DNA of 64,000 nucleotides from Zancudomyces culisetae HAW-14-8 (taxonomy: Eukaryota; Fungi; Kickxellomycota): assembly GCA_052426225.1 (NCBI GenBank), contig JBNJNM010000012.1:496001-560000 (forward strand). Reading direction: 5' to 3'. Positions 6,856 to 29,975 of this stretch are shown here, one piece after another. Each line of letters starts with the position of its first letter. The first letter of the stretch is position 1. Below the pieces are notes generated by a model. It saw only the letters and a list, made by a program, of their open reading frames with translations, was not told where the DNA came from and ran no database searches. The position numbers were made by a program, and so were the translations under genes.

Positions 6856-7215
6856 TGTTGTGTCGTAGTATTCAAAACCCTGAGAGTTCTCAATACTAGT
6901 CTCTGCACGTGACATACCGGTTCGGGTATAATCACTGGATATCGATGCACTGCTACCCCGTAGCGTGATGTGCATCAAGGGAGGCTCAGTTGAGCTATTA
7001 TCCCTATACAATGTCGGTGAGATAGTACTCACGGACATTGACTCCGGGCTTCTACGGATTCGAAGTTGACGAACACTTTCCGTCAACTCCCCAAGTGTTC
7101 GGGGGCTTAACACCCCTGTCTCTTGGTCCATGCTACTGCCCCTGGTGCTGTTTGATGAGATGGAAGAATCTCTCCTAGATTCATTCGCACCTGTACCAAA
7201 AAGATAGTTGATCAT
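6670..7215 (-). CDS. Ser-rich small protein of unit A (unknown function); the ORF runs out of the unit at 6861
   Basis: Conserved core SSMDQETGVLSPRTLGELTESVRQLRIRRSP. Versus copy B: 15 synonymous and 2 non-synonymous codon differences over 38 codons. Confidence 0.7.
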   Translation of the reverse strand: MINYLFGTGANESRRDSSISSNSTRGSSMDQETGVLSPRTLGELTESVRQLRIRRSPESMSVSTISPTLYRDNSSTEPPLMHITLRGSSASISSDYTRTGMSRAETSIENSQGFEYYDTTCCMLSSTQAKLLDEQHTASQTPNNHRYLGCSSKKSGISWVINYPNVGEIFSFNCFILISII

Positions 7216-7632
7216 TTATTTTTTATTTTACTTTTGTTTTTGCTGTTTAAAAATCTTTATTTAGATAATCTTTATTACTAATCCGTATGGTAGGACATGG
7301 ATGATGGTTTCTTTTCCACCATGTATCCTTTAAATATAAACTATAAAATCATTTTGTTCTCTAAATAGACTATAAACATGATAAGGTATAACTAATAAAG
7401 TAATATTTAGGTTTGATAATATTGATGTAGTATGAACATGTATGTGAACATTTCTCATACTACATTCATCATTATTGAATGGACGCAGTATGAAGAATTA
7501 ATTTCATGCTGAGTCCATTAATTTTCATTTTCATAATTTTTTAAATTATGTCCAGTTTTAATTCAAACTATTAAAATATGGAAATGTATATCCATGCATT
7601 AGTAGTAGTTTAATAGTTTTACTCATTCGACA
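6861..7632 (-). mobile_element. Structured ORF-bearing TGTCG...CGACA unit, copy A
   Basis: Terminal inverted repeats TGTCG/CGACA. Perfect 4-bp TSD GTTG (6857-6860, 7633-7636). Homologous to five other copies. Confidence 0.85.
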
Positions 7633-7636
7633 GTTG

Positions 7637-8092
7637 TGTTAGCGAATTCCAGGTTCCACTTCGCTATTGTGTAAAAAATATATTTATTTGATAGAAAAAC
7701 TATACTATGTACTAATGTTGTTAAGTTTTCACTATAGTAACTATAACTTTAATAAATAGACCAAACTTGTATTTTACGTGTTTATTTGATGATGTTTAAA
7801 CTATTTGAATAACTATCATATTTATACTTTTTTAAAACAACTATTAAACTTAAAACCTAAATATATTTTAAACTTAAAACTATACAAATTAAAATAATAA
7901 TCTAGAATGTTGCTGTAGAAAAAATCCAGAAGGATAAAAAAAACTAGGCAACACATAATATACTAAATAACCTATAATAAATATTAACTTATATTAAGAG
8001 ATAAACCTAAATATTAATAAATAGAAATAAATATGTAATTGGTAAGTTATTATTATATAATGTCTAGAGGTAGCTCTAGCCACTATATAACA
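7637..8092 (-). repeat. Solo LTR of the E3 family
   Basis: 456-bp reverse complement of 15420-15875; flanked by GTTG on both sides. Confidence 0.92.
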
Positions 8093-8094
8093 GT

Positions 8095-8426
8095 TGTTAT
8101 AGAATTTCATAATTCTATGATTATTTAATATTCTTATTGTATTATATGTTTATTACTAAGTATATTATTTTAGTATTATTGTTCTTTTTAATACTATATA
8201 TGTTTAACTTAATATTTTGTTAAGATGTGTTTTTAATTAATTCAAAGTGGGCGGTTGCTTTAACCCCCAGATAATAATATAATTAATGAGGAAATATAAT
8301 GTAAATAACTAACTAAACTATTGGACAAAAACCACAGGGGGAAAAAAGGTCCAATCTCAAAACTATTAACTAAAAACCTAATGAATAAATAAAGCTAATT
8401 ATATAAAATCGTATCTTTATACGACA
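8095..8426 (-). repeat. Solo LTR (family x)
   Basis: TG...CA termini. Inverted copy at 15086-15417. Contains the ATTGGAC...GTCCAAT LTR motif. Confidence 0.85.
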
Positions 8427-8427
8427 A

Positions 8428-9193
8428 TGTCGCATTATTAACAATTTGTACAATACCACGTGGATGTGCCTGAAAATGGTACACTCAGTGCGAAAATGCA
8501 AATTCATTTTTTGTTTACTTTTTTAAATAAATTCAAATAATTTTGAGCTCATTATGCAATCAATTTTTCATACTGTGCTAGTTCAATAATGATGAATGTA
8601 AAACGTAAAATGATCCCATGCATTTTACATTTAACATTAATAACAAACAAATTATTAATAATATTATAACAATAGTCATATTTTGGTATATAGTTTATAT
8701 ATAGTGGTTTAAAATTTGAATAATATATTTAAGGAGACGTATGGATGACATATGAAAACATCATCCATGTCTCGATACGGAATACTATAATAAAATAATT
8801 AAATAAAATCAAATATAAACCAAAAGATAAATTAGCAATAATGTTTTTAAACAGTTGGATTGGAACCGAATGTGACTCCAGGAGGGAGTCACACACTTCT
8901 ACCAGCATGAGCAGGGGCAGCAGCATGGATCAGGATGCAGGGGTATTAAGTCCCCGCACCCTTGGTGAGTTGACAGAAAGTGTCCGTCAACTCCAGATCC
9001 GTAGGAGCCCGGAAGAAATGTCGGTGAGTACAATTTCACCGACACTGTACAGGGGTATTAGCTCACCCGAGCACCCCTCGATGCACATTGCATTACGCAA
9101 TAGAAGTGCATCAACCATCAGTGATCGTACCAGAACCGGTATAACACGTGATGGTAGCGCTAATGGAAGTAGTGATACTTCACATTATGCGAC
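8428..9193 (+). mobile_element. Structured ORF-bearing unit, copy B; terminal A displaced to 14313 by the E2 insertion
   Basis: Starts TGTCGC and ends GCGAC|[E2]|CGACA. Inverted near-identical copy at 14318-15084. Confidence 0.85.
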
Positions 9194-9230
9194 TGTGGTA
9201 GGAATTATTACTACCAACGTTTTTGCTTAA
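8841..9230 (+). CDS. Ser-rich small protein of unit B; reads into the E2 3' LTR
   Basis: Conserved core GSSMDQDAGVLSPRTLGELTESVRQLQIRRSP; A-rich ATG context. Confidence 0.7.
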   Translation: MFLNSWIGTECDSRRESHTSTSMSRGSSMDQDAGVLSPRTLGELTESVRQLQIRRSPEEMSVSTISPTLYRGISSPEHPSMHIALRNRSASTISDRTRTGITRDGSANGSSDTSHYATVVGIITTNVFA

Positions 9231-12200
9231 TTGTAGTTTTTAATATTCTTATACTTGTTATTGTATAAGGGTACTTTCAAAATATATACTAGTATCTATT
9301 ATGTTTAGATTTATTTATTGTAAAGGACAAAGAATTTTATAATACTGAATTAAACTATTTTAAATAAAACTAAAATAGATTAAGAAATAAATTGATAACG
9401 ATTAGAACTACAACCTATCATATTCCCAAAAAACCACAAGGGGAAAAAATGGATTAGTCGGATTGTAATATCCAATAATTCATACGACAGGTCCCCCCCC
9501 TTAGTTCTGAGTGCCCCATGAAGCAACTGACGGCTGTCGAAATTGTCTTAGTGTTGGTCTTAGTCTCGCTGTTTGTATTTCTGGTATCATATTTCTATGC
9601 TCATGATACTTTTTAAGTCTGTCCCCGTTTACAACATCTCTATTTCTTTGGTCGTCTGCTATTGTATAAGTACCATTTCCGTGTACTCGTATGATGGTGT
9701 ACGGACCCTCCCACTTGGGATCGAACTTTGAACTCGTTTGTTCCACATGCTTTAAAACTTTGTCCCCATTTCCGAAACTCGCCAGTCGCACCGTTTTATC
9801 ATAGACTCCTTTTTCGTAAATCTTGTTTTTTACCATTGATTCAAATCCTGTTAGGCGAATATCCGGAAGATCCACGCTGATATGTTCTATTCTTTCTTTT
9901 ACGGCCTCCTCAAAGTCATCGACTTCTGTAGCTGGTTTCCATGATATTGGTGTGTTCAACTCGACACCATAAAGTAATTCTGATGGACTAAAGCCTGTAT
10001 TACGATTTTTCATTGTTCTTAAAGTTAACAGCAACTTCCAAATATAGTTATCCCAGTTCGCTTTGTCATGTTGACAAAGTTTTGATAGTAGATTTTTTAT
10101 ATTTTGGTTAAACCGTTCTACCTGACCGTTAGTTTGCGGTCGGTATGCGGTAGTGGGTGTGTGGTGAATATTTAAAAATTTATAGAAGTCGGTTGAGATG
10201 TCGCTCAGAAAATTAAATCCACGGTCTGTTATCAGTTGTGTTTGTACACCATAATACTGAACTACATCATATATCAAAAAGTTAATAACCGTTTCAGTGT
10301 TTATATTACTTACTGCTCTACAGATAGGCCATTTAGTTAGGTAATCTACGGCTGACAATATGTATCGGTTTCCATTATTAGAAATAGGGCTTATTGGACC
10401 AACCGCGTCTAGTCCCAGTATTTCAAACGGTTTTCTTGCCAGTATTGGAATAAGATTTGTTTTCCTTGTAACACTTTTTTGTATCGTTGGCAAAGGTCAC
10501 AGCTCTCCACAATCCTTTTTACAACTTGCAATAAATTTGGTCCTGTATACAATCTTTTTTTTCTCTCAAATGTATTATTTATTCCTTCATGTCTCTCCAA
10601 GTGTATCGCTTTTACTTTTTCTTCAGCATTTACCTCGGTTAATACTTCCCGCATACCGAACTTAGCTGAGTTTCTATGTAGTCTATCTTCATGCAGTCTG
10701 TACTTTAATGCCTTGTTTCTGAGCTTTTTCCTAAAGTCATCGTCCGCTCCTGATGGATAATTACCTGTTTCCAAATAGTGTTTTATAGCTTGATAATATA
10801 GGTTATCCATTGTGAATATATCAACTTCAACTTCACCTTCTCTAATGCCTTCATTTGTTTTTTCAACATTTTCATCTCTAGAAAGATAGTCTGAAGGATT
10901 ACTTCTCCCTGGTCTATGTCTGATTATGTAGTCATACTCGGACAAAATAATACTCCATCTGGCCAACCTTCCATTTAAGTATTTTGAGTCAAAAATTCTT
11001 ACCAACGCAGAATGGTCGGTTACTATGTCGAATTGTCTACCCCATAAATAGTTTCTAAATTTAGTTACTCCCCAAACCACTCCTAGTCCTTCCAAGTGGG
11101 TTGATGAATAATTTTTCTCTGCTGGACTTAATGATCTGCTTGCAAATTCGATGGGATGGTCTTGACTATTGATTTTTTGAGAGAGGATGGCACCTATTCC
11201 ATTTTTTGAAGCGTCAGTTGTCAACACGAATCGCTCCTCCCAGTTTGGAAAAATCAATACTGGAGCTTTTATTATTGAGTTTTTTAAGTATTCGGCTGCT
11301 TCGCTACACTCAGGCGTCCAGTTATATCTGGTATCTTTTTTTAACAGTTGATGTAATGGCTTAGCTTGTTGCGCATAGTTCTGAACAAACTTCCTATAAT
11401 ACCCGGTTAGGCCTAAAAATGACTGAAGCTCCTTGATAGACTTTGGATGTTCCAAATTCCTAACTGCTTTTACCTTTGACTCGCTTGTTCTTAATCCTTC
11501 TACACTGATAATGTGTCCTAAATATTCTAATCTGGTTTTTCCAAATGAACACTTATCTCTATGAAGTTTTATATTATTGTCTCTAAGTAATCTGAACACC
11601 TCCTCTAAATCTTTTGTATGTTGTAATTTGGACTTTGAGTATATTATAATATCATCAATAAATACTAAAGCTGATTTCCATAGTACTGATGATAATACCC
11701 TTTCCATCAGTCTTTGAAAAGTTGCAGGACTATTACAAAGACCGAAGGGCATGACATTATAACAAAACATGCCCCCTCCTGGGATCGCAAAAGCTGTTTT
11801 TGGCTTATCTGAGTCCTTCATCCTCACCTGCCAGAAACCGCTTAATGCGTCCAGCGTACTAAATATCTTTGCTCCAGCAACCGCAGTAAATATCTCTTCG
11901 ATTACTGGTAGTGCATACTGATCCTTCTTAGTGACCGCATTCAACTTACGGTAGTCTGAGCATAGTCGAATCTTCCCATTCTTTTTCCAGACCGCCACTA
12001 CTGGCGCGCACCAATCAGAAACACAAGGAGTTATAATACCTTGTTCTTCCATTTTGTTTATCTCCTCTGTTAGTTTTTCTCTCATGTAGTGAGGTACTCG
12101 ATATGGCTTAGATTTAACAGGTTTTGCTTCGCCAGTATCTATTTCATGAAGTATCCTGTCTGTCTGTGTTAGCTCTGACAATTCTGTTGCCATAAGATCG

Positions 12201-14308
12201 CTGTGTGCATCTATAATCCTTTGTATTTCCTCATCTATCTCCTCATTCTGTGTCTCTTTTTCCTCTAACCCTTCTATTCCTACCCCATATAGCTCATACT
12301 CATTATCTTTTGACTCAATCGTTATGTCTTTGCGTGTTGAAATTGACAAGGATATTTCATACTCCTCGTTATTCAACACTAACTCATTACTGTTTAAGTT
12401 TATAACCGCCCCGTGTCTTTTAAACCAGTTTGTTCCAAGGATTAACACATGGGTTCTCTGATCCATAACTGTCATGTCAACCGGAAATCTTTGCCCAGCA
12501 ATTGTAAGCGGTACCTCTGAAATTATACCCTTTGTTCCGTGTTTTCTTCCATCTGCTGTCACAATTATTTGGTTAGATTCTTTGTCGATATCCAACCCTA
12601 GCACTTCAGCAAAAGTATTTGAAATTACAGAACAGGCAGCGCCTGTATCCAGTATGGCCCAATAATGTCTCCCAAATATGCTTATAATGACTTTGCAGTT
12701 TGAACTTACATTTTCAATGCTGTTCACTTCTTTAATTTCATACTCTTCACCTTTTCTTATATAAGTAATGAGTTCTTTTCGCACCTGTGGAGAAGCCTCC
12801 AATAATTGAGCTAGATTTATATTAGCTTGTATACCTTGTAGTTCCTTTTTGATAGAATATTCATCTTTATCCGTTGTGAATTTTATAGGTATTCCCTTCT
12901 TTCTCTGTATTTTGGTTTTATAATATCTCTGTTACTTTTGACTTCTATCGTTGACTCACCTTCTCTTCTTCTCTTCACATCTATTTCTTTTTGTAGTTCA
13001 TTTTTTCTCTTTTCTGCTGCATAAACCTCTGTTTCACCTGCTTCGCACTCCAAAACTTGACTAACAATTACCTCGTTTTCCACTTCCAAGAAATTTACCT
13101 CCCTTTTATTTGTATTCAAAGGGATTGCATTACTTCCTGTCGCTACACTTGTGTTGGTTCGTGGGTTAGTTTCCCTCCTAGGACATTGGTATGGCCAATG
13201 ACCCGGCTCCCTACACTCGAAACAGAAAGGATTCTTTGGTGGTGGTCTGCTGTTACCTGCCTTAATGCTATTGATAATGCTAATACTAAGCTCGTCAAAC
13301 TTTTTAACAATCTTTTCATACATTACTTCAGGATCATCTTTTAAGGATCTAGCCTCTTGTATCAACTTTTCCTTTGTGACGTTTTCAAACAGATTTCCTC
13401 CGCTGCCCGATGGTGATTCGTTGCAAATACTTTCAAGTTGCTCATATCTTACTAATTGGTTTATTGCTTCTTCCCATGATTCAGCACCTTTTTCAAAAAT
13501 AAGTTTTTTAAATGATGGTTTCAGACAAGCAGTCAAGTACCGTAACTTATCTTTCTCCTCGGTTATACTTGCGGCTTTGAACAGTACTTAAAGTTTAGAT
13601 GCAGTCTCTAGAATATCCATGCTCTCCTGTTTGAATCCTTGGAGCTCTTCCCATGAAGATAACTCTCATTCTTTGCTTTTAAACTGTTTCAAAAATGACT
13701 CCTTGCACTTTGCCCAATCCTTGAATTTATCTTGATAGATAATGTACCACTGTTTTGCTTTACCGCCTAAATATGACTCTACACAATCCACGTACTCTGC
13801 TTCTTCAAAATCGTTCTTTTTCATGTAAATCTCAAACTTTTTTAGTTTTGTTTACTGTTATTTTTTATATTTAATATACTTTTTGATAATTATATAATTT
13901 TAGGTTATGGGGATATTAAATTTATGTAGTTGTAATATATAAATGTAACTGGTTTGGTTAGATATATTTACTTTAACTTAATATTTGTTTCAGCCTAGCT
14001 GGGAGCGCCAAATGTGGTAGGAATTGTTACTACCAACGTTTTTGCTTAATTGTAGTTTTTACTATTCTTATACTTGTTATTGTATAAGGGTACTTTCAAA
14101 ATATATACTAGTATCTATTATGTTTAGATTTATTTATTGTAAAGGACAAAGAATTTTATAATACTGAATTAAACTTCTTTAAATAAAACTAAAATAGATT
14201 AAGAAATAAATTGATAACGATTAGAACTACAACCTATCATATTCCCAAAAAACCACAAGGGGAAAAAATGGATTAGTCGGATTGTAATATCCAATAATTC
14301 ATACGACA
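9194..14308 (-). mobile_element. Ty3/gypsy LTR retrotransposon E2
   Basis: 296-bp LTRs (9194-9489, 14013-14308) with ~4 mismatches. TSD CGAC (9190-9193, 14309-14312). PBS TGGCGCTCCCAGCTAGGC (14010-13993). G-run PPT. Confidence 0.95.
9501..13850 (-). pseudogene. E2 gag-pol, disrupted (ORF pieces 12883-13536, 10409-12802, 9501-10493)
   Basis: CFECREPGHWPYQC, LDTGA, FIDDII, TTDAS, integrase core and GPY are present. Frameshifts occur and there is no clear gag start. Confidence 0.85.
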
Positions 14309-14671
14309 CGACATAACTGTCGCATAATGTGAAGTATCACTACTTCCATTAGCGCTACCATCACGTGTTATACCGGTTCTGGTACGATCACTGATGGTTG
14401 ATGCACTTCTATTGCGTAATGCAATGTGCATCGAGGGGTGCTCGGGTGAGCTAATACCCCTGTACAGTGTCGGTGAAATTGTACTCACCGACATTTCTTC
14501 CGGGCTCCTACGGATCTGGAGTTGACGGACACTTTCTGTCAACTCACCAAGGGTGCGGGGACTTAATACCCCTGCATCCTGATCCATGCTGCTGCCCCTG
14601 CTCATGCTGGTAGAAGTGTGTGACTCCCTCCTGGAGTCACATTCGGTTCCAATCCAACTGTTTAAAAACAT
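14273..14671 (-). CDS. Ser-rich small protein of unit B'; reads into the E2 5' LTR
   Basis: Identical to the copy B protein up to the unit end. Confidence 0.7.
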   Translation of the reverse strand: MFLNSWIGTECDSRRESHTSTSMSRGSSMDQDAGVLSPRTLGELTESVRQLQIRRSPEEMSVSTISPTLYRGISSPEHPSMHIALRNRSASTISDRTRTGITRDGSANGSSDTSHYATVMSCRMNYWILQSD

Positions 14672-15084
14672 TATTGCTAATTTATCTTTTGGTTTATATT
14701 TGATTTTATTTAATTATTTTATTATAGTATTCCGTATCGAGACATGGATGAGGTTTTCATGTGTCATCCATACGTCTCCTTAAATATATTATTCAAATTT
14801 TAAACCACTATATATAAACTATATACCAAAATATGACTATTGTTATAATATTATTAATAATTTGTTTGTTATTAATGTTAAATGTAAAATGCATGGGATC
14901 ATTTTACGTTTTACATTCATCATTATTGAACTAGCACAGTATGAAAAATTGATTGCATAATGAGCTCAAAATTATTTGAATTTATTTAAAAAAGTAAACA
15001 AAAAATGAATTTGCATTTTCGCACTGAGTGTACCATTTTCAGGCACATCCACGTGGTATTGTACAAATTGTTAATAATGCGACA
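14318..15084 (-). mobile_element. Structured ORF-bearing unit, copy B'
   Basis: 767-bp reverse complement of copy B, about 2 differences. Confidence 0.85.
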
Positions 15085-15085
15085 T

Positions 15086-15417
15086 TGTCGTATAAAGATA
15101 CGATTTTATATAATTAGCTTTATTTATTCATTAGGTTTTTAGTTAATAGTTTTGAGATTGGACCTTTTTTCCCCCTGTGGTTTTTGTCCAATAGTTTAGT
15201 TAGTTATTTACATTATATTTCCTCATTAATTATATTATTATCTGGGGGTTAAAGCAACCGCCCACTTTGAATTAATTAAAAACACATCTTAACAAAATAT
15301 TAAGTTAAACATATATAGTATTAAAAAGAACAATAATACTAAAATAATATACTTAGTAATAAACATATAATACAATAAGAATATTAAATAATCATAGAAT
15401 TATGAAATTCTATAACA
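15086..15417 (+). repeat. Solo LTR (family x)
   Basis: Inverted copy of 8095-8426. Confidence 0.85.
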
Positions 15418-15929
15418 ACTGTTATATAGTGGCTAGAGCTACCTCTAGACATTATATAATAATAACTTACCAATTACATATTTATTTCTATTTATTAATA
15501 TTTAGGTTTATCTCTTAATATAAGTTAATATTTATTATAGGTTATTTAGTATATTATGTGTTGCCTAGTTTTTTTTATCCTTCTGGATTTTTTCTACAGC
15601 AACATTCTAGATTATTATTTTAATTTGTATAGTTTTAAGTTTAAAATATATTTAGGTTTTAAGTTTAATAGTTGTTTTAAAAAAGTATAAATATGATAGT
15701 TATTCAAATAGTTTAAACATCATCAAATAAACACGTAAAATACAAGTTTGGTCTATTTATTAAAGTTATAGTTACTATAGTGAAAACTTAACAACATTAG
15801 TACATAGTATAGTTTTTCTATCAAATAAATATATTTTTTACACAATAGCGAACTGGAACCTGGAATTCGCTAACAGTGGCGTCAGCGACAGGATATCGGA
15901 AGTATCCTGATATTTTAGTAACTGAATTA

Positions 15930-18900
15930 ATGTACAAAATGAATACTCCTACTGTATTTGTTGCAAGTAATGGTTTAGATCCAGATGAGTGGTTGGAAGA
16001 GTTCTGCCTTATGGCAAAGTTAAATATATGGGATTCAGAGGACTAGACCGATCTGGTCAAGCTATACTTGGGCAACAACGAAAAGATGTGGTATAAAAAG
16101 AATAAATCATCTTTTACAAGTTGGGAAAGTTTTGCTACATTATTTAAGAAGAAATTTAAACAAGTATAACCAAAATCGCAAATCTGGGAACGCCTCCGTT
16201 CAATTAAACAAATTGATTTCGATACTATTGAAGAATTCGAACTTGAATTAGTAGCTTTGTTTCAAAGTGCCGAGATATCGGATGAGAAGATCCGTACTGA
16301 CTGGCTTATTAGTACACTTAAACCAGAGCACAAGAAGATTGTAGAGGAAGAGCAACTGAGTGAGTGGGATAAAGTAATAACAAGGGTGATAACTGTCAAG
16401 GTCTGGACTTGGATAAAATAGATTTATTAGTAAACTAGACTATAAGTGAATAAACTAAACGAAACTAAACTCGTTGTAAAACTTATCGTTCCATCATGAT
16501 AATCGTATAGCTTATATACTTTTCATGATGGGACGATAATTTTAAAATTATACTAATTTAAAACATAACTAAAACATAACTAAAACATTTAAATTAATAA
16601 TGTGGAGGTCGGTAAATGTTATGGATATAATTGATAAATTATATGAAACATTGTCCTGTGGAGACAAAGGTTTCATATAATTTAAAACCATAACAATAAC
16701 AGAGGAACAATCGTTGCGCACAAACCAAAGGAGAAGCAAGCTATCAGAGGTGGACCCAAAGCTAAAGGAATACAATCGCAATGCAGCGAGCAAGTCTGGA
16801 AAAAACGTTAAAGACTTAGTAAAGGACCAGAAACCTTATGGTCAATTTTTGAAGATGTTTGATGAGATGAGTGTGAATTTGTTAAATAAAGTTGAGGAGT
16901 TGTAGACAACAAGTTAAAAGAAGCAGAAATAATCAAACAACGTAGTTTCGGACCAAGAAAATTGATATGTTATAACTGTCAACAGGAGGGGCATACAAGA
17001 AATGATTGTCCCCAGTTATTCAAAAAACCTAAACCATACGTTCAACCTGAAGATGTGGCTAAGACAATTAACTATATTCAAATATCAGATGATGTAGAAC
17101 CAATTCAACAAGATATATTTTCCGTCGAAAAGCGTAAATCCACCACTGAACAGGATAACGATGCACCTAGAAGAGTTGGAAGACCTCGATTACAAGAACT
17201 AGCACAAGTTCGCAATACCAGGGTTGAAAATCAACAAGGTAGTTTAGGGGCAGAAAATATTCAGGCAACGGTTGGTAGAACGGTAAAAGAGTACGCTAAA
17301 CCATTTTCGCTGATCGAGGAGCTAGAGAAGATGTCTCTTAAGGTGAATGTATTGCAGCTTTTGGACTGTTCGACTACAATGTCTAAAGAATTAATCGAGT
17401 ATATTAATAAACAAAAATTACCTGAGGTTAACGAACTAGATGTTGAAGAAAAAAGGTTATCAAACTGTAAAGCACTAGTTAAGGTGTTTGGGCAGAACCT
17501 CTGGGCAGTTGTGGATACTGGCGCAGCATGTTCTGTGGTTTCCTCAATTTTAATAGAGGAATGGGACCTAGAACTAGATACATATAATAAACAAACTATA
17601 GTTACTGCAGACGGAAAACGTCATACCACGTTGGGTAAGGTGACTGACATACCATTAAAAATATCATCTTTTGTATTTCCAGTAAACCTGTGGGTTATGG
17701 AGCGTAAGGAAGATATCTTGATTCTAGGCACAGACTGGTTGCTGGAACATAGAGTTTCGCTTAACCTGCGTATCCCAGAACTTCGTTTACCTATTGAAAA
17801 TGCGGAAATTACAACTAAGTTAGCAATGTTCACAAATAAAAGTGTGTTAAGAGAAGAACAAGAGATATATTTATTGTGTAAAGAAGAAACAGTTGGTAAA
17901 AATTATAATGAATCTATGGTGTTCAAAAAAGTTATGGAAGAATTCGCTGACATTTTTGTGGATGATATTTCTCAATTAACTCAAACAAATGTTATGGAAC
18001 ACAAGATTGATATAATTGAAGAAAAACCAATAAAGTTACGACCATATCGAATGCCGCAGAAAACTCAAGAAGCCGTTAGGCAAGAGTTAAAAGAGATGGA
18101 GAAGAGGGGAGTTATTTCACATTGCATTTCAGAGTGGTGTGCTCCGGTAGTCGTCGTGCACAAGAAAAACGGCCAGTTAAGGATCTGTGCCGACTATCGT
18201 AAACTGAACGCTGTAACCAAAAAAGATTCCTATCCCTTACCCTTAATTGACGATCTGTTTATGTCTTTATCTGGATCAACTGTGTTTACTTCGCTTGATG
18301 CCCTCAGTGGCTTCTGGCAAATTAAAATGTATGAAAACGACAAATGCAAAACTGCCTTTTCAATTCCAGGCGGAGGTAGCTATCAATATAATGTAATGCC
18401 TTTTGGGCTTACAAATAGTCCTGCTACATTTCAACGAGCAATGGAGATTGTTTTAAAGGATGTTTTATGGAAAAAGGCAGTGGTGTTCGTGGACGACATT
18501 ATAATTTATTCAAAAGATATCAAACAGCACATAACTGATTTAAGAGAAGTATTTTTATTGTTAAGAACAAATGGGATACAGTTACATAAACAAAAATGCG
18601 TAATAGGTCAAAGAGAGTTAGAGTATCTTGGACACACTATTTCTGAAAAGGAGTCGGTACTAGCCCTTCAAAGATTGAGACAATAAAAAAGATAAAGCCG
18701 CCAACTTGTGTCAAAGAATTACAATCTATATTAGGATTAACAGGATATTATAGAAGGTACATTGAAGGATATTCAAAAATTACATCACCTTTAAATAAAC
18801 TCTTACGCAAGGAGACCAAATGGTGTTGGGAATCGATTCATGACGATGCAATAAATATATTAAAGTAAAAATTGATAACTGCTCCGATACTAGGATTCCC

Positions 18901-20625
18901 TATTTGGACTGAAGAATTTGTGCTAACTACAGACGCCTCAGTGACTGGAGTAGGCGCTGTACTTTCACAAGTTGTTAACGGTGAAGAGAGAGTTATTGAA
19001 TTTGCTAGTCGTACTACCAACAAAGCAGAACAAAACTATTCTATATGTCATCTAGAAGCGTTAGCAGTTATTTGGAGTGTTAAAAAGTTTAAATATTATC
19101 TATGGGGACGAAGATTTAAAATACGCACTGATCATAAATCTTTGTTACAAATATTCAATGGATCCGAGCTTACAGGTAGAATTGCCCGTTGGGCAATGAT
19201 ACTTAGAAGCTATGACTACTATATTGAACGCTTACCCGGTAAACACAATCCTGCTGATGCCTTGTCTCGAAATATATTAAATGAAGATCATCCTAAAGCA
19301 AATATTGAATTGGATATTTATTCTATGGATATATTAGAATATGTGGATACAGTACAATATCTTACCTCTATGCAATATCCTACTGGTGCTAATGACAAAA
19401 TGAGAGAAAAAATTCGCAATAGAGCACGTCAATATTATTTAAAAGATGGGAAGTTATTTAAAAAGGTAAATAAGATATTTAAAGAGGTTTTGCACGAAAG
19501 GAATTTTAAAGAAATTATAACTAATATACACAACGAGGGACATGAAGGTATTGAAAATACGTGGCGTAGGGTAACCAGTAAATATACAGGAAAAAATTTG
19601 TATAAGGATGTTTTAGGGATTGTCAAATCATGTCACATTTGTCAAATGCATAAAGACGGCAAAACAAAGAAAAATTATTTGGTGCCTATTATTACTTCAA
19701 AACCATTTGAAATTTTTGGTATTGATGCAATTGTACCGATTTCACCAATAACGGGAAATGGAAATCGCTACATTTTAACAGCCGTTGACTATTTTACAAA
19801 ATGGCCAATCGCCGTGCCTGTTACAAATTTATTGAGTGAAACAATAATAAATTTTATAGTTAACGAAATTGTTGCAAATTATGGCGTTCCACAACAAATA
19901 ATAAGCGACCGCGGTTCAAGTTTTGTTTCAGATAGTACAACAAATGTTTTCGAGTGGTTGGGATTAAACCATAGACCTACAACTTCTTATAGGCCACAAA
20001 GTAACGGCCAGGTAGAACGATTTAACAGAACTTTAATTAATATACTTAATAAACAATGCAAATACGATAAAGAAAATTGGGATTCTTATATTTGGAAAAC
20101 ATTGTTAGTGGTAAGGTCATTAAAAAATAAATCGACAGGTTATACGCCTTCTGAGTTGTTATATGGAGTAAATATTTGTTTACCTTCTACTTGGACTTAT
20201 AATGGTGAGATTGAAGATGTAGAAGAAAATATTAGTAGTAGAATTAATAGCTTTAAAATAGATTTGCCTGAGTTAAGAAATCTTGCATTACGAAATTCGA
20301 TAAAAGCGAAGAATTTTATGGAAAAACGATACAACGAAGATGTTAGACATTATAAATTTCGAATTGGAGAAACAGTATTGAAGCGAGACGAAATGGAAAG
20401 AAGCAAATTCGAAAGTTATTGGGAAGGACCCTATACGGTTAAAGAGTATTCTCAAAAGGTGCTTATATTATTAACGATCATCAAGGTAACCGAGAATTAG
20501 TAAACGGTGACATGTTAAAAATGTACTTCACAAATAAGAACATGATACCCGAAGTAACAACTACGCTTAAATCAAAACTAAAAAGGTTTAAAAATAGAGA
20601 GCGGGATGAGGGCATCCACGCTTAA
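15930..20625 (+). pseudogene. E3 gag-pol with stops, frameshifts and a nested solo LTR
   Basis: CYNCQQEGHTRNDC, VDTGA, FVDDII, TTDAS and integrase core are present, with in-frame TAG/TAA codons. Confidence 0.88.
16394..16695. repeat. Nested solo LTR with a 5-bp TSD inside E3 gag
   Basis: TG...CA termini. TSD ATAAC (16389-16393, 16696-16700). Removing it restores the gag frame TRVITEEQSLRT. Confidence 0.85.
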
Positions 20626-21097
20626 GGGAGGAGGTTCTGTTATATAGTGGCTAGAGCTACCTCTAGACATTATATAATAATAACTTACCAATTACATATT
20701 TATTTCTATTTATTAATATTTAGGTTTATCTTTTAATATAAGTTAATATGTATTTTAGGTTATTTAGTATATTATGTGTTGCCTAGTTTTTTTTATCCTT
20801 CTGGATTTTTTCTACAGCAACATTCTAGATTATTATTTTAATTTGTATAGTTTTAAGTTTAAAATATATTTAGGTTTTAAGTTTAATAGTTGTTTTAAAA
20901 AAGTATAAATATGATAGTTATTCAGATAGTTTAAACATCATCAAATTAACACGTAAAATACAATTTTGGTCTATTTATTAAAGTTATAGTTACTATAATG
21001 AAAACTTAACAACATTTGTACATAGTATAGTTTTTCTATCAAATAAATATATTTTTTACACAATAGCGAACAGGAACCTGGAATTCGCTAACACAAC

Positions 21098-21506
21098 TGT
21101 CATATAATTAATGATAGTTCATACCTTCTAGCTTTGATTGGCAGTTTATTTATCATATTTAATTTATCATATTTATTATATCATATTTATTTCATTGGAG
21201 ATTGGACTTTTCTCCCTATGGAGGGTTTTATCCAATTTCTATCCTTTATAACAGGTTAGTCGTTATCAGAAAAAGTTTTATAATTAGTTTTAGAGATAAC
21301 AAAAGATATATATAATTTATACACAGTTTTGAAGAAGAAAAAAAAATAAAACAAAAATAAGATATCAAAAATTACGACTGTACTAACTTCAGAAAACGAA
21401 CTATTAGCAAGGGTGTAGGATAAAAACTATACAAGTGCGATAGAGTTCGGAGTTGAGTACAAAGCCCCTAAAAAGGCAAACATATTTAAAATAATATTAC
21501 ACAACA
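21098..21506 (+). repeat. Solo LTR (family y)
   Basis: TGTCATA...CAACA termini; contains ATTGGACTTTTCTCCC...GGGTTTTATCCAAT. Confidence 0.75.
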
Positions 21507-21510
21507 TAAC

Positions 21511-22355
21511 TGTCGCATGAGTGAGCAATTGTACACTTAAGTACAATTGTAGTACAAATTGAAGTACACTCATCGCAGAATGAAAATTAAATTTTTGTAT
21601 CTGCATGAAATTCAATTTGGAAAATGAGCGACACAGTATGAAATTAATTCTACATGCTGAGTCGACTCAATAATGATAGAATTTAGTATGAAAAATGTCT
21701 TCATACTAAATCCTAAATTAAATAATAATTATTAGGTGTTCCCAACACCTAATTCAACATTCACTACATAAGTAAAATATGTAGAGGAAGTCAGTATCAA
21801 GTCATAATAGTTCTTATAGTACATAAGTAATATTAATTTAAACGTTTTGAAGATAGTAGCAGTTTAATAGAAATTTATATTTAAGGAACAAGAAGAGGCA
21901 AATGGAAAAACTTCATCCATGTTCTACTCTACTGATTAAATAGTATATTAATTTAAACACAATAAAAAAAACTTCAGAATATTATTTATAATAACCAATA
22001 ACCAAAAATGAACTATTTCTTTTATAGTAAAAGCGAATCCAAGAGGGATTCAGAAACTAGCTCCAGTCTGAGTACGGCTAGTAGCATGGACCAAGAGACC
22101 GGGGTTCTAAGCCCTCGGACTCTTGGGGAGTTGACAGAAAGTGTCCGTCAACTCCAAATCCGTAGGAGCCCAGAACCAATGTCCGTGAGCAGCATCTCAC
22201 CGACATTGTACAGGGGAAATAGCTCACCCGAGCACCCCTATATGCACATCACACTACGGGGTAGTGGTGCATCCTCATCAAGTGGTCATACCCGAACTGG
22301 TATGACACGTGATGAACATAATAATCATGATCTCCCGAATTATGATTATTACGAC
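21511..22355 (+). mobile_element. Structured ORF-bearing unit, copy C; ends CGAC, abutted by copy D
   Basis: TGTCGC start; same motifs and hairpins as copies A and B. Confidence 0.82.
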
Positions 22356-22475
22356 TGTCGAGATACTAGATCCGGGTATCACGGCATAGCAACGTGTATT
22401 GGATCAGATTACACGTTGCTGAACAATTACATTGTTCATTCAAGAAACGTTGAGATATGTATGAATGATTGTTAA
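22008..22475 (+). CDS. Ser-rich small protein of unit C; reads into unit D
   Basis: SSMDQETGVLSPRTLGELTESVRQLQIRRSPEPMSVSSISPTLYR. Confidence 0.7.
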   Translation: MNYFFYSKSESKRDSETSSSLSTASSMDQETGVLSPRTLGELTESVRQLQIRRSPEPMSVSSISPTLYRGNSSPEHPYMHITLRGSGASSSSGHTRTGMTRDEHNNHDLPNYDYYDCRDTRSGYHGIATCIGSDYTLLNNYIVHSRNVEICMNDC

Positions 22476-22979
22476 CAACACATTCATACACCAACGTTTC
22501 AACGCAAACATTAATATAGTAATATTGTTTTTTTATGGATGATAGTTTAGTGATTATTTATAAAGAGTTAGATTATATAAATAAAAGACATAGGATGAAT
22601 TTGAAAGCGTCATCCATGTCTTAATATACGGACGTATAAATACAAATCTAGTTAATAATAAAAAAATTATATCAAAACTACGAAAATGTACTATTCAAAT
22701 GGGTATGAAGATGAGGAGATGGCAATAAGTACCACTTCATCATCTTCCGGAAGAAGTACTGGCAGCAGCATGGATCAGGATGCTGGGGTATTAAGCCCCC
22801 AGACCTTGAAAGATCTGACCACTAGCGTGCGTCAGATACAGATCCGTAGCAGCCTAGGGAGTCCGTCGGGGATCAGACTTTCCCCTACACCTCCAAAGGG
22901 GTGTGTGTCACCCCATTCTGCGCAAATGGGGATAAGGTTACAGAGCAATTGTGTAACCCCCAGATCCCATATTGCGACA
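22356..22979 (+). mobile_element. Structured ORF-bearing unit, copy D (divergent subfamily)
   Basis: TGTCG...GCGACA termini; TCATCCATGTC motif; inverted relative at 29355-29975. Confidence 0.82.
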
Positions 22980-22991
22980 GATATGTTTTGA
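22686..22991 (+). CDS. Ser-rich small protein of unit D
   Basis: GSSMDQDAGVLSPQTLKDLTTSVRQIQIRSS. Confidence 0.68.
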   Translation: MYYSNGYEDEEMAISTTSSSSGRSTGSSMDQDAGVLSPQTLKDLTTSVRQIQIRSSLGSPSGIRLSPTPPKGCVSPHSAQMGIRLQSNCVTPRSHIATDMF

Positions 22992-25900: not shown

Positions 25901-28209
25901 GGGTATTCTATACGGCTTTTGTTTTATCGGCGTATCGTCGTTCAGTACTATTTTATGTTCAGTAAGGTGTGTCTGCGAGAGGTCTTCGATACTTTCTGCA
26001 AAAATCTCTGAATTCTGTTCCAATATTATCTTAATTCTAACATCCTCGTACTCATCTTTTGTCGATGCTTCCTCTGTGGATGCCTTTAACATATAATATA
26101 GTTCAGTCTCTTCCCGTTTGATTCTGTTATTACTGGTTGACGTTATCAATGGTATCTTCAGTTCCATCTTATCAATAGGTAACTTTAGTTCGGAAGTCTT
26201 GAGGTTTAACTGTGCCTTGTGATCCAGCAACCAATCGGTACCCAGTATCAAGGTGTTGTCATTTCTCTCCATGATGGTCATATCGGCTTCGAATCTGTAC
26301 CTTCCAATGTAAATTGGCACATTGGTAATCCTTCCTAGTGAATGATGTTTCTTACCATCGGCGGTAATTATTATCTGATCGCACTCCTCATCTGCAATTA
26401 AACCCCACATACCCATTAACTTAGGAGTTGCTACCGAACAGGCGGCTCCCGTATCAACCACTGCCCACAACTCCGTATCGAAGATGGTCACTCGAATCTT
26501 GCAGTTAGTAGTCCTAGGCGATTCAAACTGTATTTCATTCAATTCTGTGCTTTTTGTTCGTTTGCACAGGTTGTTCATCTCTGTAGTCAGACTTGGTGCT
26601 ATATCCATAAGTTGCGGGAAACTGATCTCTGGTTGCCATTTCTCAAGTTGTTCCTTCAGCGAAAAGGGTTTTATTCCTTCCACCATCTTAATAGTTCCTC
26701 TAGGTTTTCTTCCTTGACTCTGACTCTTAGCATGTTCTTCCAGCTGCTCCTTACTTGCACTACTTCCTGACTTCTTACCCATGTCTTCCTCAAATGCTAC
26801 TTTTTTTACTATGGCGGGTGGAACTACTATGTTAGTCTCTACTATCATGTCTTCTCCTTGTTCCTGCATTAATCGCTGCTTCCTTGGTTCCGGGGCTTCT
26901 CGGCTAATAGGTGTCGTTCTTCTGTACGGGGTACTCTTTCTGGGTGATGATTCTTGGCGTGCGACTGCCAATACGTCATTTTCCACTTCTGAATCCTGAT
27001 GGAATTCCAGGTAGTTTACGTCCCTTTTCTGCTTCACTGTTCTCATCTGCTCTCTGAACTTGTCACAATCATACTTCTTGTGACCCTCCTCGTGACAATA
27101 GTAACATTTTACTACTCTCGGCCTGTCACTGTTATATCTGCGGCTGCTACTTTCCTTGAGTCTTTTTTCTATCACTTGATCTACTTTATTAAGCAGATTC
27201 AAACTCCATTCATCCATTTTTTGTATCATCTGCTCGTAACCCAGATTCTCATTTGTCATTTGCTTAATAGACTTCCCTGTTGTTACCACTTTTGTCTTTT
27301 GCTTGTTTACCGTACTCTTCACCTCTGGTCTGGAACTTTGGGCTATATACATACTCTTCAGGTTCTGAATGATGTCATACCATGCAGTAATGCCACTTCC
27401 TTTTATAGCTACTCTAGCATCTTGATCAAGCGCACTAAGCAACCAATCCACTTTTGCGGCTTCTTCCGTAATTCCAGCTTTCTCAAGTATGTCTTCCAGC
27501 TGGTACTCAAACTCTTCTACAGTTTCAAATCCTGACTGTCTAATATCTTTATGTTTCTCAAAATGGTGAAATCTTTGCTCTTTCACTTGATAGTTCCGCT
27601 TGAACTTCTTTTTAAAATCATCCCAATCCTTAACTGTGGGTTTGTTCTTCCTGTACCATAGCTTTTCAATCTTTCCTAAATACAGCTGTACAAAATCCAC
27701 CCAGTCAACACCATCCCACTTGTTCAGCTTAGCTACCAGCTCAAAGCTTGCGATCCATTCCTCAGGATCCTCTCCTGTAGCTGCCTCGAATGTGTTTAAA
27801 TTTTCCATTTGAATCTGACCTCTTCCAATATATCTCCTTAATCCGGCCTAGCTGGGAGCGCCACTGATGTATTAAATTTCTTGTTTAAATATTATTTACT
27901 TTTTTAATTAATTATCCCTGTATCTTTTATTTTATACTTATAATAACAGTATAATCTTTTATTGCTAGTGGATTCAATATATTGTAATTTACAGATTAAG
28001 AATCACTCAATCATTTCTGTTGGGAATTTCCTTTTACTCCCAAAATACCATACTAATTTTTAATACTAATTTATAATTAAAAGACTATTGGACAAAAACC
28101 ACAAGAGGATAGAAAAAGTTCAATCTAAAAAACATAACAAAACTAAAACCTAATAACCAATAAATAAAAGCATGTTGCTTATAAGTTCTCGTCATATCTC
28201 TACATGACA
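22989..28209 (-). mobile_element. Full-length Ty3/gypsy LTR retrotransposon E4 with an intact ORF
   Basis: 345-bp LTRs (22989-23333, 27865-28209). PBS TGGCGCTCCCAGCTAGGC (27863-27846). PPT-like GGGGTCGGGGTTC. TSD not preserved. Confidence 0.95.
23324..27808 (-). CDS. E4 single-ORF Gag-Pol polyprotein, 1494 aa
   Basis: CYYCHEEGHKKYDC, VDTGA, FIDDII, TTDAS, HEESHHG..CVYC, DDE core and GPY; no chromodomain. Confidence 0.95.
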   Translation of the reverse strand: MENLNTFEAATGEDPEEWIASFELVAKLNKWDGVDWVDFVQLYLGKIEKLWYRKNKPTVKDWDDFKKKFKRNYQVKEQRFHHFEKHKDIRQSGFETVEEFEYQLEDILEKAGITEEAAKVDWLLSALDQDARVAIKGSGITAWYDIIQNLKSMYIAQSSRPEVKSTVNKQKTKVVTTGKSIKQMTNENLGYEQMIQKMDEWSLNLLNKVDQVIEKRLKESSSRRYNSDRPRVVKCYYCHEEGHKKYDCDKFREQMRTVKQKRDVNYLEFHQDSEVENDVLAVARQESSPRKSTPYRRTTPISREAPEPRKQRLMQEQGEDMIVETNIVVPPAIVKKVAFEEDMGKKSGSSASKEQLEEHAKSQSQGRKPRGTIKMVEGIKPFSLKEQLEKWQPEISFPQLMDIAPSLTTEMNNLCKRTKSTELNEIQFESPRTTNCKIRVTIFDTELWAVVDTGAACSVATPKLMGMWGLIADEECDQIIITADGKKHHSLGRITNVPIYIGRYRFEADMTIMERNDNTLILGTDWLLDHKAQLNLKTSELKLPIDKMELKIPLITSTSNNRIKREETELYYMLKASTEEASTKDEYEDVRIKIILEQNSEIFAESIEDLSQTHLTEHKIVLNDDTPIKQKPYRIPHHLHQQVRSELQKMEENGVISPCVSEWCSPVVAVWKKDGKLRICADYRKLNSVTKKDCYPLPTIEDIFMALAGSKVFSSLDARSGFWQIRMHEPDKDKTAFSIPGSGSYSYNVMPFGLSNSPASFQRLMEQALAPVLWKVAVVFIDDIIIYSENVDQHLQDLQQVFDLLKESQIQLHREKCKLGMRKLEYLGHVISDQGIGTSPSKIEAVMRTKSPTSVKEVQAFLGLTGYYRKFVDGYAKIVAPILKLLKKDSKWHWSNECETAVVQLKEKLCEAPTLAHPDWEREFIVTTDASVSGVGAILSQQFDDGEKPISYVSRITNHHEKNYSVSHLEGLAVVWSVGKFKYYLYGKHFTLRTDHKSLVQLFNSKDITGRVARWAMILRNYDYTIVHILGKANPADALSRLDEGDQNSNEEVIDIFTLDYLYYNAIRNYLKDYSYPSGADDNFRNKLRNRAKKYVLRDELLYRKAKGALREVLHERNIRETITQIHEESHHGIENTWRIVAESYAGEGLYEVVKQVVTECVYCQYYKGNRVKRSKLNPIIGRKPFEIFGLDAVGPINPISKSGNRFIITGIDYLTKWPVAQAVSNIKSETIVNFIITKIVQDFGVPSQIITDRGPGFIGDVATKVYEFLQIKYTPTTSYRPQSNGQVERLNQTLKNVLVKQCMHDKENWDSYLWKSLLAVRTMRNRTTQFSPAELLYGVKLATPVIWTPPPEVNDWDLAIQERIASMDTGIDELRNTGLENSVRAKAKEKLVYDKAIKVTTFAVGDLVMKTNEQQLSKLERTWEGPYKIERILRYGTYIISDNEGNRDLVHEEMLKKFHHSQYMVPEVSNTLKSKLKRFRERVSPIWGRGSVV

Positions 28210-28212
28210 TCA

Positions 28213-28586
28213 TGTCGTGAATTTTAATCACTGCAATTTATAATTTTTTCCCACTGGGTTTTTATTAAATTGCTAAGAGGGTTAGATTAAATTCACGTTA
28301 CATTCCCGTAAATCTGCATGACAAAGCATTTAAGATGGATCGACAATTGAGAAAATCATCCCCAACACGTTTATAAATTTTTAATGACTGGATTTACAAT
28401 TTTAGCTTATGTTACATTTACTTGTTTCAGAATATTTTTATTTCATATGTATCATAAAATTTATATGATTAAAGTATTTTAATAGGAAAATATTTTTTAC
28501 AGAATTATATAAAAGGTTTAGTATTTCTTAAATAAAACATCATCAGTTCTCAAATACAGTTTTACTTATACTATATTTATACGACA
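28213..28586 (+). repeat. Solo LTR (family b)
   Basis: Diverged direct repeat of 5790-6164. Confidence 0.8.
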
Positions 28587-28589
28587 GTC

Positions 28590-28960
28590 TGTTATATAAA
28601 TAGCTTTATATATATATATTAATGAAATAGCAATATAAACTATCTTCTATTACTTAGTATTATCTTATTCTAAATACTCTTTAAGCCTAGATGCCTTATT
28701 AGATATATTGTGTGTTAGAATCCATTATTACTAATAATTAAACTGAAAAAATCTGATAGTAAAACTCTCACAAAAACCTACCAAACCTATATAAACATAC
28801 TATGATATAATTCTAAGTAGATTCAATTTTGACTGTTTACAACTTACGTAATTTTATCCAATAAAAACTAAATATATTTTAAACCCAAAATTACTAGAAA
28901 AATTTCACTAAACAACTAAATAAAAATAAACATATTAGAAAATAAGGGTACTATATGACA
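28590..28960. repeat. Probable solo LTR (family d)
   Basis: TGTTATATA...TATATGACA termini. Confidence 0.6.
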
Positions 28961-28965
28961 TGTCG

Positions 28966-29354
28966 TGTCGGTATTTATTTTCGATTTGTCGGTCTTATCC
29001 GACTTTACTGCTTTATCTAGTATTTTTTTTATTTACTACTAGTAAGCGGTAGGATCTTAGTTCTTATGTTAATATTGTTATAATATAATAAGTATATACT
29101 AAATACAAATCCGAAAATAAGATTGCTAAAAACATAGAAGAGAAAAAGCAGTGCTTAAATGCATTTTCCTCGTATATACTAAATTATTAAAATACAATGA
29201 ATAATATAATAACCATACGAAATTAAATATTATTTGGGAAATGATGATTTACGAATAGTGTAAAACCTCATAGGTGAAAAGCACAAATTAATTCATCACA
29301 TCTCACTCGCTATAACCCGAGTGAGACGCCCATCTGTCGATCTTTGATGCGACA
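28966..29354. repeat. Solo LTR (family e) inserted in the terminus of unit E
   Basis: TGTCG...CGACA termini; TSD GTCG (28962-28965, 29355-29358). Confidence 0.75.
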
Positions 29355-29647
29355 GTCGCAATATGGGTACTGGGGGTTACACAATTGCTCTGTAACCTTA
29401 TCCCCATTTGCGCAGAATGGGGTGACACACACCCCTTTGGAGGTGTAGGGGAAAGTCTGATCCCCGACGGACTCCCTAGGCTGCTACGGATCTGTATCTG
29501 ACGCACGCTAGTGGTCAGATCTTTTAAGGTCTGGGGGCTTAATACCCCAGCATCCTGATCCATGCTGCTGCCAGTACTTCTTCCGGAAGATGACGAAGTG
29601 GTACTTATTGACATCTCCTCATCTTCATACCCATTTGAGTAGTACAT
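29303..29647 (-). CDS. Ser-rich small protein of unit E
   Basis: Nearly identical to the copy D protein up to the unit end. Confidence 0.68.
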   Translation of the reverse strand: MYYSNGYEDEEMSISTTSSSSGRSTGSSMDQDAGVLSPQTLKDLTTSVRQIQIRSSLGSPSGIRLSPTPPKGCVSPHSAQMGIRLQSNCVTPSTHIATVASKIDRWASHSGYSE

Positions 29648-29975
29648 TTTGTAGTTTCTTTGTATTTTTTTATTATTATTAACTGGATTTTTATTTAATA
29701 CGTCCGTATATTAAGACATGGATGACGCTTTCAAATTCATCCTATGTCTTTTATTTATATAATCTAACTCTTTATAAATAATCACTAAACTATCATCCAT
29801 AAAAAATAATATTACTATATTAATGTTTGCGTTGAAACGTTGGTGTATGAATGTGTTGTAAACAATCATTCATACATATCCCAACGTTACTAGGATGAAC
29901 AATTCCATTGTTCAGCAACGATAATATGATCCAATATTTGTAGCTATTTCGATATCAGCAGTTAGTTCTTCGACA
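29355..29975 (-). mobile_element. Structured ORF-bearing unit, copy E; terminal T at 28961
   Basis: Reverse-complement homologue of copy D; marks the distal end of the stack. Confidence 0.82.

Follow-up and report, generated by a model that had tools for sequence, protein, structure and literature searches.

Six short DNA units that begin with TGTCG and end with CGACA lie in a 64,000-nucleotide stretch of the genome of the fungus Zancudomyces culisetae HAW-14-8 (contig JBNJNM010000012.1, positions 496,001 to 560,000 of the forward strand; hereafter the window), and each carries a conserved open reading frame (ORF). Are these units mobile elements in their own right, or are they pieces of something larger? 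The original prediction, made from the window alone, headlined a new family of single-unit mobile elements, and gave as its other model solo long terminal repeats (LTRs) of an unseen lineage with a Gag start about 350 nt inside the LTR. We found that the six units, called copies A to F here, are very probably solo LTRs of one clade of Ty3/gypsy retrotransposons with just such a Gag start. The lineage had gone unseen for the sole reason that the window, which is AT-rich eukaryotic DNA dense in gypsy elements, contains no full-length copy. All six copies are present where they had been reported, at 6861-7632 (A, minus strand), 8428-9193 (B, plus), 14318-15084 (C, minus), 21511-22355 (D, plus), 22356-22979 (E, plus) and 29355-29975 (F, minus). 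B and C are not independent, since both belong to one 1560-nt inverted duplication, so that there are five distinct copies.

We searched the window's own 27-Mb assembly with the window copies; the copy counts that follow are lower bounds. Copy B returned more than 40 near-full matches with 92-100% identity. At five or more loci, LTRs of this B type stand in direct pairs 2900-2904 nt apart, one of these loci having three LTRs in a row. Likewise, LTRs of the D1 type were found in pairs 5347-5348 nt apart, those of the D2 type (the sister of D1, with an 80% identical LTR) 5376 nt apart, and those of the E type 5147-5149 nt apart. The D2-type LTRs flank elements of 6222 nt with a single ORF of 1629 amino acids (aa), and the E-type elements are 5771 nt long; in the E-type copy that we examined, the ORF is split into pieces of 931 and 636 aa. 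Reading the junctions, we found the primer-binding site (PBS) TGGCGTCAGCGACAGGAT directly after the 5' LTR and a purine tract (the polypurine tract, PPT) directly before the 3' LTR. Because the PBS and PPT are on the inner sides of the paired units, the units are LTRs. The PBS is common to all types over at least 20 nt, and pairs over 18 nt with the 3' end, including the CCA, of the tRNA-Ser(UGA) genes of the same genome.

The paired LTRs of an element differ at 0-2 positions. Duplications of 4 bp flank five B elements or arrays, six solo B LTRs, three D or E elements and copy A in the window, and several other solo copies have none. The clade comprises at least five LTR subfamilies, 622-846 nt long, which start with TGTCG and end with CGACA within a terminal inverted repeat of about 8-11 nt. 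In the 1629-aa ORF, Pfam identified a CCHC zinc knuckle (zf-CCHC, 500-515), a protease (571-656), a reverse transcriptase (RT; RVT_1, 804-966), an RNase H (1029-1157) and an integrase (IN) with a zinc-binding domain (1245-1292) and a core (1307-1407). This order of protease (PR), RT, RNase H and IN, behind a Gag with a CCHC knuckle, is that of Ty3/gypsy elements (Metaviridae). In Ty1/copia elements IN comes before RT; here RT precedes IN. Direct pairs around gag-pol were the very observation by which the original prediction proposed to decide between its two models, and they establish the solo LTR model.

Each window copy could be assigned to one of these types. Copy A is an A-type solo LTR of 772 nt, and its 4-bp target-site duplication proved perfect, as reported, with GTTG at 6857-6860 and 7633-7636. 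Copy B, a B-type solo LTR of 766 nt, matches at 98% identity the LTRs of the 3.66-kb Gag-protease elements described below, and copy C is its duplicate within the inverted arm at 14316-15875. Copy D is a D1-type solo LTR of 845 nt with its ATG at 22008, 99% identical to the LTR pairs 5347-5348 nt apart around Gag-Pol ORFs. Copy E, an E-type solo LTR of 624 nt with its ATG at 22686, is 98% identical to the E-type pairs, and copy F is an E-type solo LTR inverted relative to E, with its longest matching arm 98% complementary. The reported ends hold throughout, except that the final A is missing in copies B, D and F, because another LTR starts there; thus copy E begins one base short of the end of copy D. 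The absence of a PBS after any window copy had also been described correctly; as none of the six copies is followed by one, all six are solo LTRs. They were probably left behind by LTR-LTR recombination of complete elements.

We next consider the reading frame. The polyprotein ORF of each subfamily begins inside the 5' LTR, 349-358 nt from its end, and continues through the PBS into Gag, so that the LTR encodes the first 116-119 residues (about 117 codons), a part rich in Ser and Pro. The ORF of a solo LTR has no stop because it continues into Gag in the full elements. Over a 73-codon core of the LTR-coded part, comparison of the B, D1, D2 and A types gave a ratio of non-synonymous to synonymous divergence (dN/dS) of 0.12-0.13, with a proportion of synonymous differences (pS) of 0.43-0.54. 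For copies A and B, the original prediction had counted 15 synonymous and 2 amino-acid-changing differences over 38 core codons; we found the same 15 and 4 of the latter. Insertions and deletions in the LTR-coded part come in threes, and although the five subfamilies diverge by 25-45% in nucleotides, all of them keep the frame open. Furthermore, the B and E types cross the PBS in a different frame from the D and A types, and each stays in frame with its own downstream Gag.

Among solo B-type copies (n=13) the picture is different, with a ratio of non-synonymous to synonymous proportions of differences (pN/pS) of about 1.7, a value that indicates neutral evolution. The absence of stop codons, which had been reported for every copy, is true of the window; genome-wide, a 1-nt deletion goes with a premature stop in 3 of 29 B-type LTRs. 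From the pN/pS of the solo copies and their frameshifts it follows that selection acts on Gag in replicating elements, not on solo units. The claim that the peptide is under selection is therefore right between subfamilies and wrong for the solo units.

Every window copy has a TATA-like box, an A-rich stretch, an ATG and a coding-like 3' half, with the frame running off its 3' end. In copy B the TATA-like box is at about 8723-8735, an invariant motif at 8761-8770 and the ATG at 8841, and the frame is open up to the end of the LTR. The motif, TCATCCATGT, had been described as invariant, and the alignment confirmed this across the five distinct window copies. Transcription would start between the TATA-like box and the ATG, near this motif. 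In every subfamily TCATCCATGT also holds an ATG that opens an upstream ORF of 2-7 codons (for example, 8761-8790). This may be a conserved upstream ORF ahead of Gag if transcription starts upstream of it, or the motif may be an initiator if transcription starts there.

The coding part of the LTR is also predicted to be highly structured. Compared with dinucleotide shuffles, it folds with z scores of -4.5 to -7.3 in the four types tested, against -0.3 to +1.3 for gag and protease controls of equal length. RNAalifold on six sequences returned a chain of hairpins, with compensatory changes in 17 of its 66 pairs. The pS of the LTR-coded part is below the value of about 0.8 in downstream gag, and this lower synonymous divergence fits a second constraint on the sequence. 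The coding LTR part would then be U5 (the unique 5' region of the LTR) doubling as a structured cis-acting RNA, like the 5' GAG region of Ty1.

Two further observations concern the LTR sequence. The non-coding U3 (unique 3' region) of the B, D2 and E types (for example, 8428-8757) also folds far better than shuffles (z -5.1 to -5.7), so by prediction the whole LTR is hairpin-rich. In addition, D1 (21511-22355) and D2 form a mosaic, in which LTR positions 401-800 are 85-96% identical, U3 49-59% and the internal region 54-78%. Synonymous divergence between the two is 0.15 in the LTR core and 0.85 in downstream gag. The sharp peak of identity is likely to reflect either an exchange of the U5 segment between lineages or very strong constraint at the nucleotide level.

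Other explanations for the units have to be weighed against these results. If the 0.6-0.85-kb unit were itself mobile, it would be a non-autonomous retro-satellite of a single unit that uses gypsy integrase and encodes a small accessory peptide. This was the headline of the original prediction, and it accords with the fact that none of the six window copies has a PBS, a PPT or an internal region, and with the clean 4-bp duplication around copy A. The direct pairs with PBS, PPT and 4-bp duplications refute it, the same sequences being the paired LTRs of complete elements with gag-pol inside. Furthermore, a solo LTR with a duplication is the normal outcome of LTR-LTR recombination, the stop-less ORF is explained by its continuation into Gag, and the solo copies show the raised pN/pS and the frameshifts given above. 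We give the retro-satellite next to no probability. That solo LTRs have been co-opted as mini-genes is extremely doubtful. In such a case each would express an N-terminal Gag fragment fused to flanking sequence, acting in trans like Ty1 p22/p18. Each solo LTR does have a TATA-like box and an ATG, 20 of 23 solo B copies keep an ORF of at least 118 codons, and the public Z. culisetae annotation calls such ORFs as hypothetical proteins of 101-136 aa; restriction of Ty1 by a truncated Gag is established (PMC4551931). However, the solo copies give no sign of purifying selection, the B-type frameshifts recur as an objection here, and the C-terminal tails would be arbitrary flanking sequence.

A different objection is that the LTR frame is not translated at all, its conservation reflecting structured cis-acting RNA or DNA (U5 hairpins), with Gag starting from a Met downstream of the PBS. 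The predicted structure with its compensatory pairs, the lowered pS and the D-type copies that have a Met right at the PBS are what this would lead one to expect. But the low dN/dS is accompanied by many synonymous changes, the frame stays open across the five divergent subfamilies with indels in threes, the two PBS frames each match their own downstream Gag, and the B and E types have no Met near the PBS. We therefore consider an untranslated frame very unlikely. A broader proposal joins parts of these ideas. In it, the last ~350 nt of the LTR would be a clade-specific module under double constraint, as hairpin-rich U5 RNA required in cis and as a conserved Ser/Pro-rich N-terminal domain of Gag. 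The dozens of solo LTRs, with their promoter, ATG and open frame, would produce N-terminal Gag fragments that act in trans to modulate or restrict retrotransposition, so that LTRs would provide a counterpart of Ty1 copy-number control. Taken as a whole, this is decidedly unlikely.

Solo LTRs of a Ty3/gypsy clade whose Gag starts within the LTR thus remain the preferred reading, and the following points weigh against it. For the A type, at least 17 LTRs with 91-99% identity are present in the genome, but none of those scored forms a pair at element spacing, and only A-like Gag remnants were found. Copies E and F have no matching flanking duplications (their flanks are CGAC/GATA and CATG/TGTC). 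Within the LTR-coded part, the first ~25 codons are poorly conserved, and the invariant Met of the SSMDQ core, likewise within the LTR, could be the start of translation instead. The transcription start, the polyadenylation site, the borders of U3, R (the repeat region) and U5, and translation from the LTR ATG are predictions from sequence. The helper that would copy the B-type elements is likewise inferred, from their shared ends.

The location of the elements relative to tRNA genes was informative as well. LTR ends were found 2-14 nt from the 5' end of a tRNA gene in 12 cases (11 loci elsewhere and one in the window), where a rough estimate of the chance expectation is below 1 in 1000 per site. 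The tRNA gene always points away from the element, either end of the LTR may face it, and one of the 4-bp duplications takes in the first base of a tRNA-Thr gene. This pattern would be produced by integration aimed at the start of genes transcribed by RNA polymerase III (Pol III). Repeated hits at one fixed point would explain why LTRs abut, or cut off, each other's last bases. We also considered a common target motif, suggested by flanks such as ACACAAC, and rejected it, as such flanks are more readily accounted for by pile-ups, in which they are the ends of other LTRs. At 155-235 of the window there is a tRNA-Tyr(GTA) gene on the minus strand, and an LTR of a different gypsy family starts at 243, 7 nt from the 5' end of the tRNA. 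Judging from such positions, several gypsy families of this genome appear to be Pol III-targeted.

The B-type elements form a distinct group within the clade. They are 3662 nt long and have an ORF of 826 aa that starts inside the upstream LTR and ends 12 nt before the downstream one. It encodes a CCHC zinc knuckle and a retroviral-type aspartic protease, and a domain search of it found no RT, RNase H or integrase. Six B internal regions are 99-100% identical to each other, with the ORF intact in five. Residues 1-691 are 61% identical to the D2 Gag-protease, the next ~120 residues match nothing, and the last ~13 resemble the C-terminus of the polyprotein, a short match that is not significant alone. 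Since its Gag-PR is only ~61% identical to that of any autonomous relative found, the B type is, as judged by sequence comparison, an internally deleted lineage long separate from the autonomous types found and not a fresh deletion. B, D and E share the same PBS, similar LTR tips and a nearly identical stretch of DNA, PPT included, directly ahead of the 3' LTR. At the same time, the LTR copies scored for the B type are at least as many as those of its autonomous relatives. On the grounds of the shared PBS, the similar tips and PPT, and these numbers, we infer copying in trans, in which D- or E-type enzymes would reverse-transcribe and integrate the B-type elements.

Tandem arrays of the form LTR-internal-LTR-internal-LTR were seen both for the B-type Gag-protease element (G000:C6:1371390-1378000) and for the autonomous D2 type (G000:C6:1001075-1010400). 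The repeats of the B-type array are identical; one 4-bp duplication, ACTG, flanks the array as a whole, and a tRNA-Thr gene is 3 nt away.

How do these elements compare with known ones? With an internal region that is an 826-aa Gag-protease ORF, the B type does not fit the definition of terminal-repeat retrotransposons in miniature (TRIM) or large retrotransposon derivatives (LARD), which have no coding capacity. It shares with the plant TR-GAG-like elements the presence of LTRs, PBS, PPT and gag and the absence of RT, RNase H and IN, and belongs with them on these features. The TR-GAG definition is not known to include a protease, and the B type keeps its protease. Partnerships between autonomous and non-autonomous families of LTR retrotransposons are described in wheat (PMC9744471).

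The autonomous elements have the order Gag(CCHC)-PR-RT-RNase H-IN in common with Ty3 and its Pol III-targeted relatives (Tj1, Ylt1, Tyl3, Tyl6, Tca8/beta and DGLT-A). As in Ty3-like elements, a tRNA serves for priming, elements of either orientation lie a few bp ahead of tRNA genes, and solo LTRs cluster there. They differ in the one ORF of the intact copies, which begins ~350 nt within the 5' LTR and is read through the PBS, in the tRNA-Ser(UGA) primer and in an LTR that is, by prediction, unusually rich in hairpins. The GAG3 start of Ty3 is downstream of its LTR. For Ty3, Tj1 and Ylt1, integration at Pol III start sites is documented (PMC5911963), and the present clade adds an early-diverging fungus (Kickxellomycotina) to the hosts of elements with Pol III targeting.

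For the Gag start itself, the closest parallel is Ty1, an element of a different superfamily (copia order, IN-RT) that uses a tRNA-iMet primer. The 5' untranslated region (UTR) of Ty1 RNA is 53 nt long, the PBS is at nt 95-104 and GAG begins upstream of the PBS (PMC5454406). Furthermore, 327 nt of the GAG coding sequence form the TIPIRT domain, a cis-acting structured region for translation, packaging and reverse transcription (PMC5454406). The logic is the same here, with an ORF start before the PBS that overlaps structured RNA, the structure being predicted only in our elements. The extent differs, as Ty1 has ~40 coding nt before the PBS and the present elements have 349-358 nt (116-119 codons) with a conserved peptide core. 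The clade thus has an exaggerated form of the Ty1 5' layout in another superfamily, and its elements are otherwise plain Ty3/gypsy elements of a known kind. Literature searches for a published gypsy Gag that starts in the LTR, or for Zancudomyces retrotransposons, found nothing specific, and we would only tentatively suggest that an LTR-embedded Gag start is undescribed for gypsy elements. As 'unrecognised mobile units' the copies were a false lead. What the clade offers is of modest interest: about 117 Gag codons inside the LTR, where protein coding overlaps predicted RNA structure, and a young Gag-protease-only derivative that forms tandem arrays.

A phmmer search of 1.84 billion representative proteins with the N-terminal peptide matched only three short Z. 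culisetae proteins, the 101-136-aa 'hypothetical proteins' OMH83560.1, OMH80460.1 and OMH82249.1. All three match only the LTR-coded peptide and, from their sequences, look like ORFs of solo LTRs. Public Z. culisetae 'hypothetical proteins' of this origin should be repeat-masked. The host of the clade is a Harpellales fungus, and the only outside matches are the Z. culisetae proteins. The capsid-like part of Gag (~240-410) matches other Gag proteins, for example in Smittium culicis, with 25-30% identity. The one S. culicis copy that we examined for a Gag start in the LTR was degenerate, with no detectable LTRs. AlphaFold2, run on Gag residues 1-460 with an alignment of 8 rows, gave a mean predicted local distance difference test score (pLDDT) of 36, a model too poor to show disorder or to exclude a fold; residues 1-222 had pLDDT below 50, with one predicted helix at 38-49. 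A public Z. culisetae 'Pro-Pol polyprotein' corresponds to an A-type-like element that has neither RT nor RNase H, with a gene model beginning within the LTR-coded region.

The surroundings of the copies in the window show nested insertions. Copy A was inserted at the extreme tip of an inverted solo LTR of element X, a different gypsy family at 15401-21111 with LTRs of 475 nt. The PBS of element X, at 15876-15895, is nearly the same tRNA-Ser(UGA) PBS, with one mismatch in the 16-nt pattern searched. Within the last four bases of copy B sits gypsy 2, an unrelated element outside the clade (9194-14308, minus strand) that has 296-nt LTRs and a duplication of CGAC at 9190-9193 and 14309-14312. Around it, the arms of the 1560-nt inverted duplication (7637-9196 and 14316-15875) were computed to be 100% complementary, each with a 334-nt spacer between its LTR of element X and its B-type LTR. 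Taking out gypsy 2 and its CGAC duplication leaves a palindrome whose arms are only 4 nt apart (TAAC). The identity between the arms exceeds that between the LTRs of the enclosed element, which suggests gene conversion between the arms; possibly, the duplication is an assembly artefact.

We also considered whether a single inverted element could have supplied both E and F as its LTRs, or whether recombination between inverted solo LTRs produced them, and rejected both, as the flanks CGAC/GATA and CATG/TGTC do not fit. The truncated 3' end of copy F adjoins a 20-nt piece at 29335-29354 that starts with TGTCGCAT and ends with CGACA, and this may be what is left of a junction, or of an LTR after extreme deletion. 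Finally, at 21102-21125, directly after the 3' LTR of element X, there is an LTR-like start, TGTCATATAATTAATGATAG. The same sequence adjoins a truncated B-type LTR on another contig (G000:C13:1615095 onward), and it probably represents another LTR family with the same type of insertion site.

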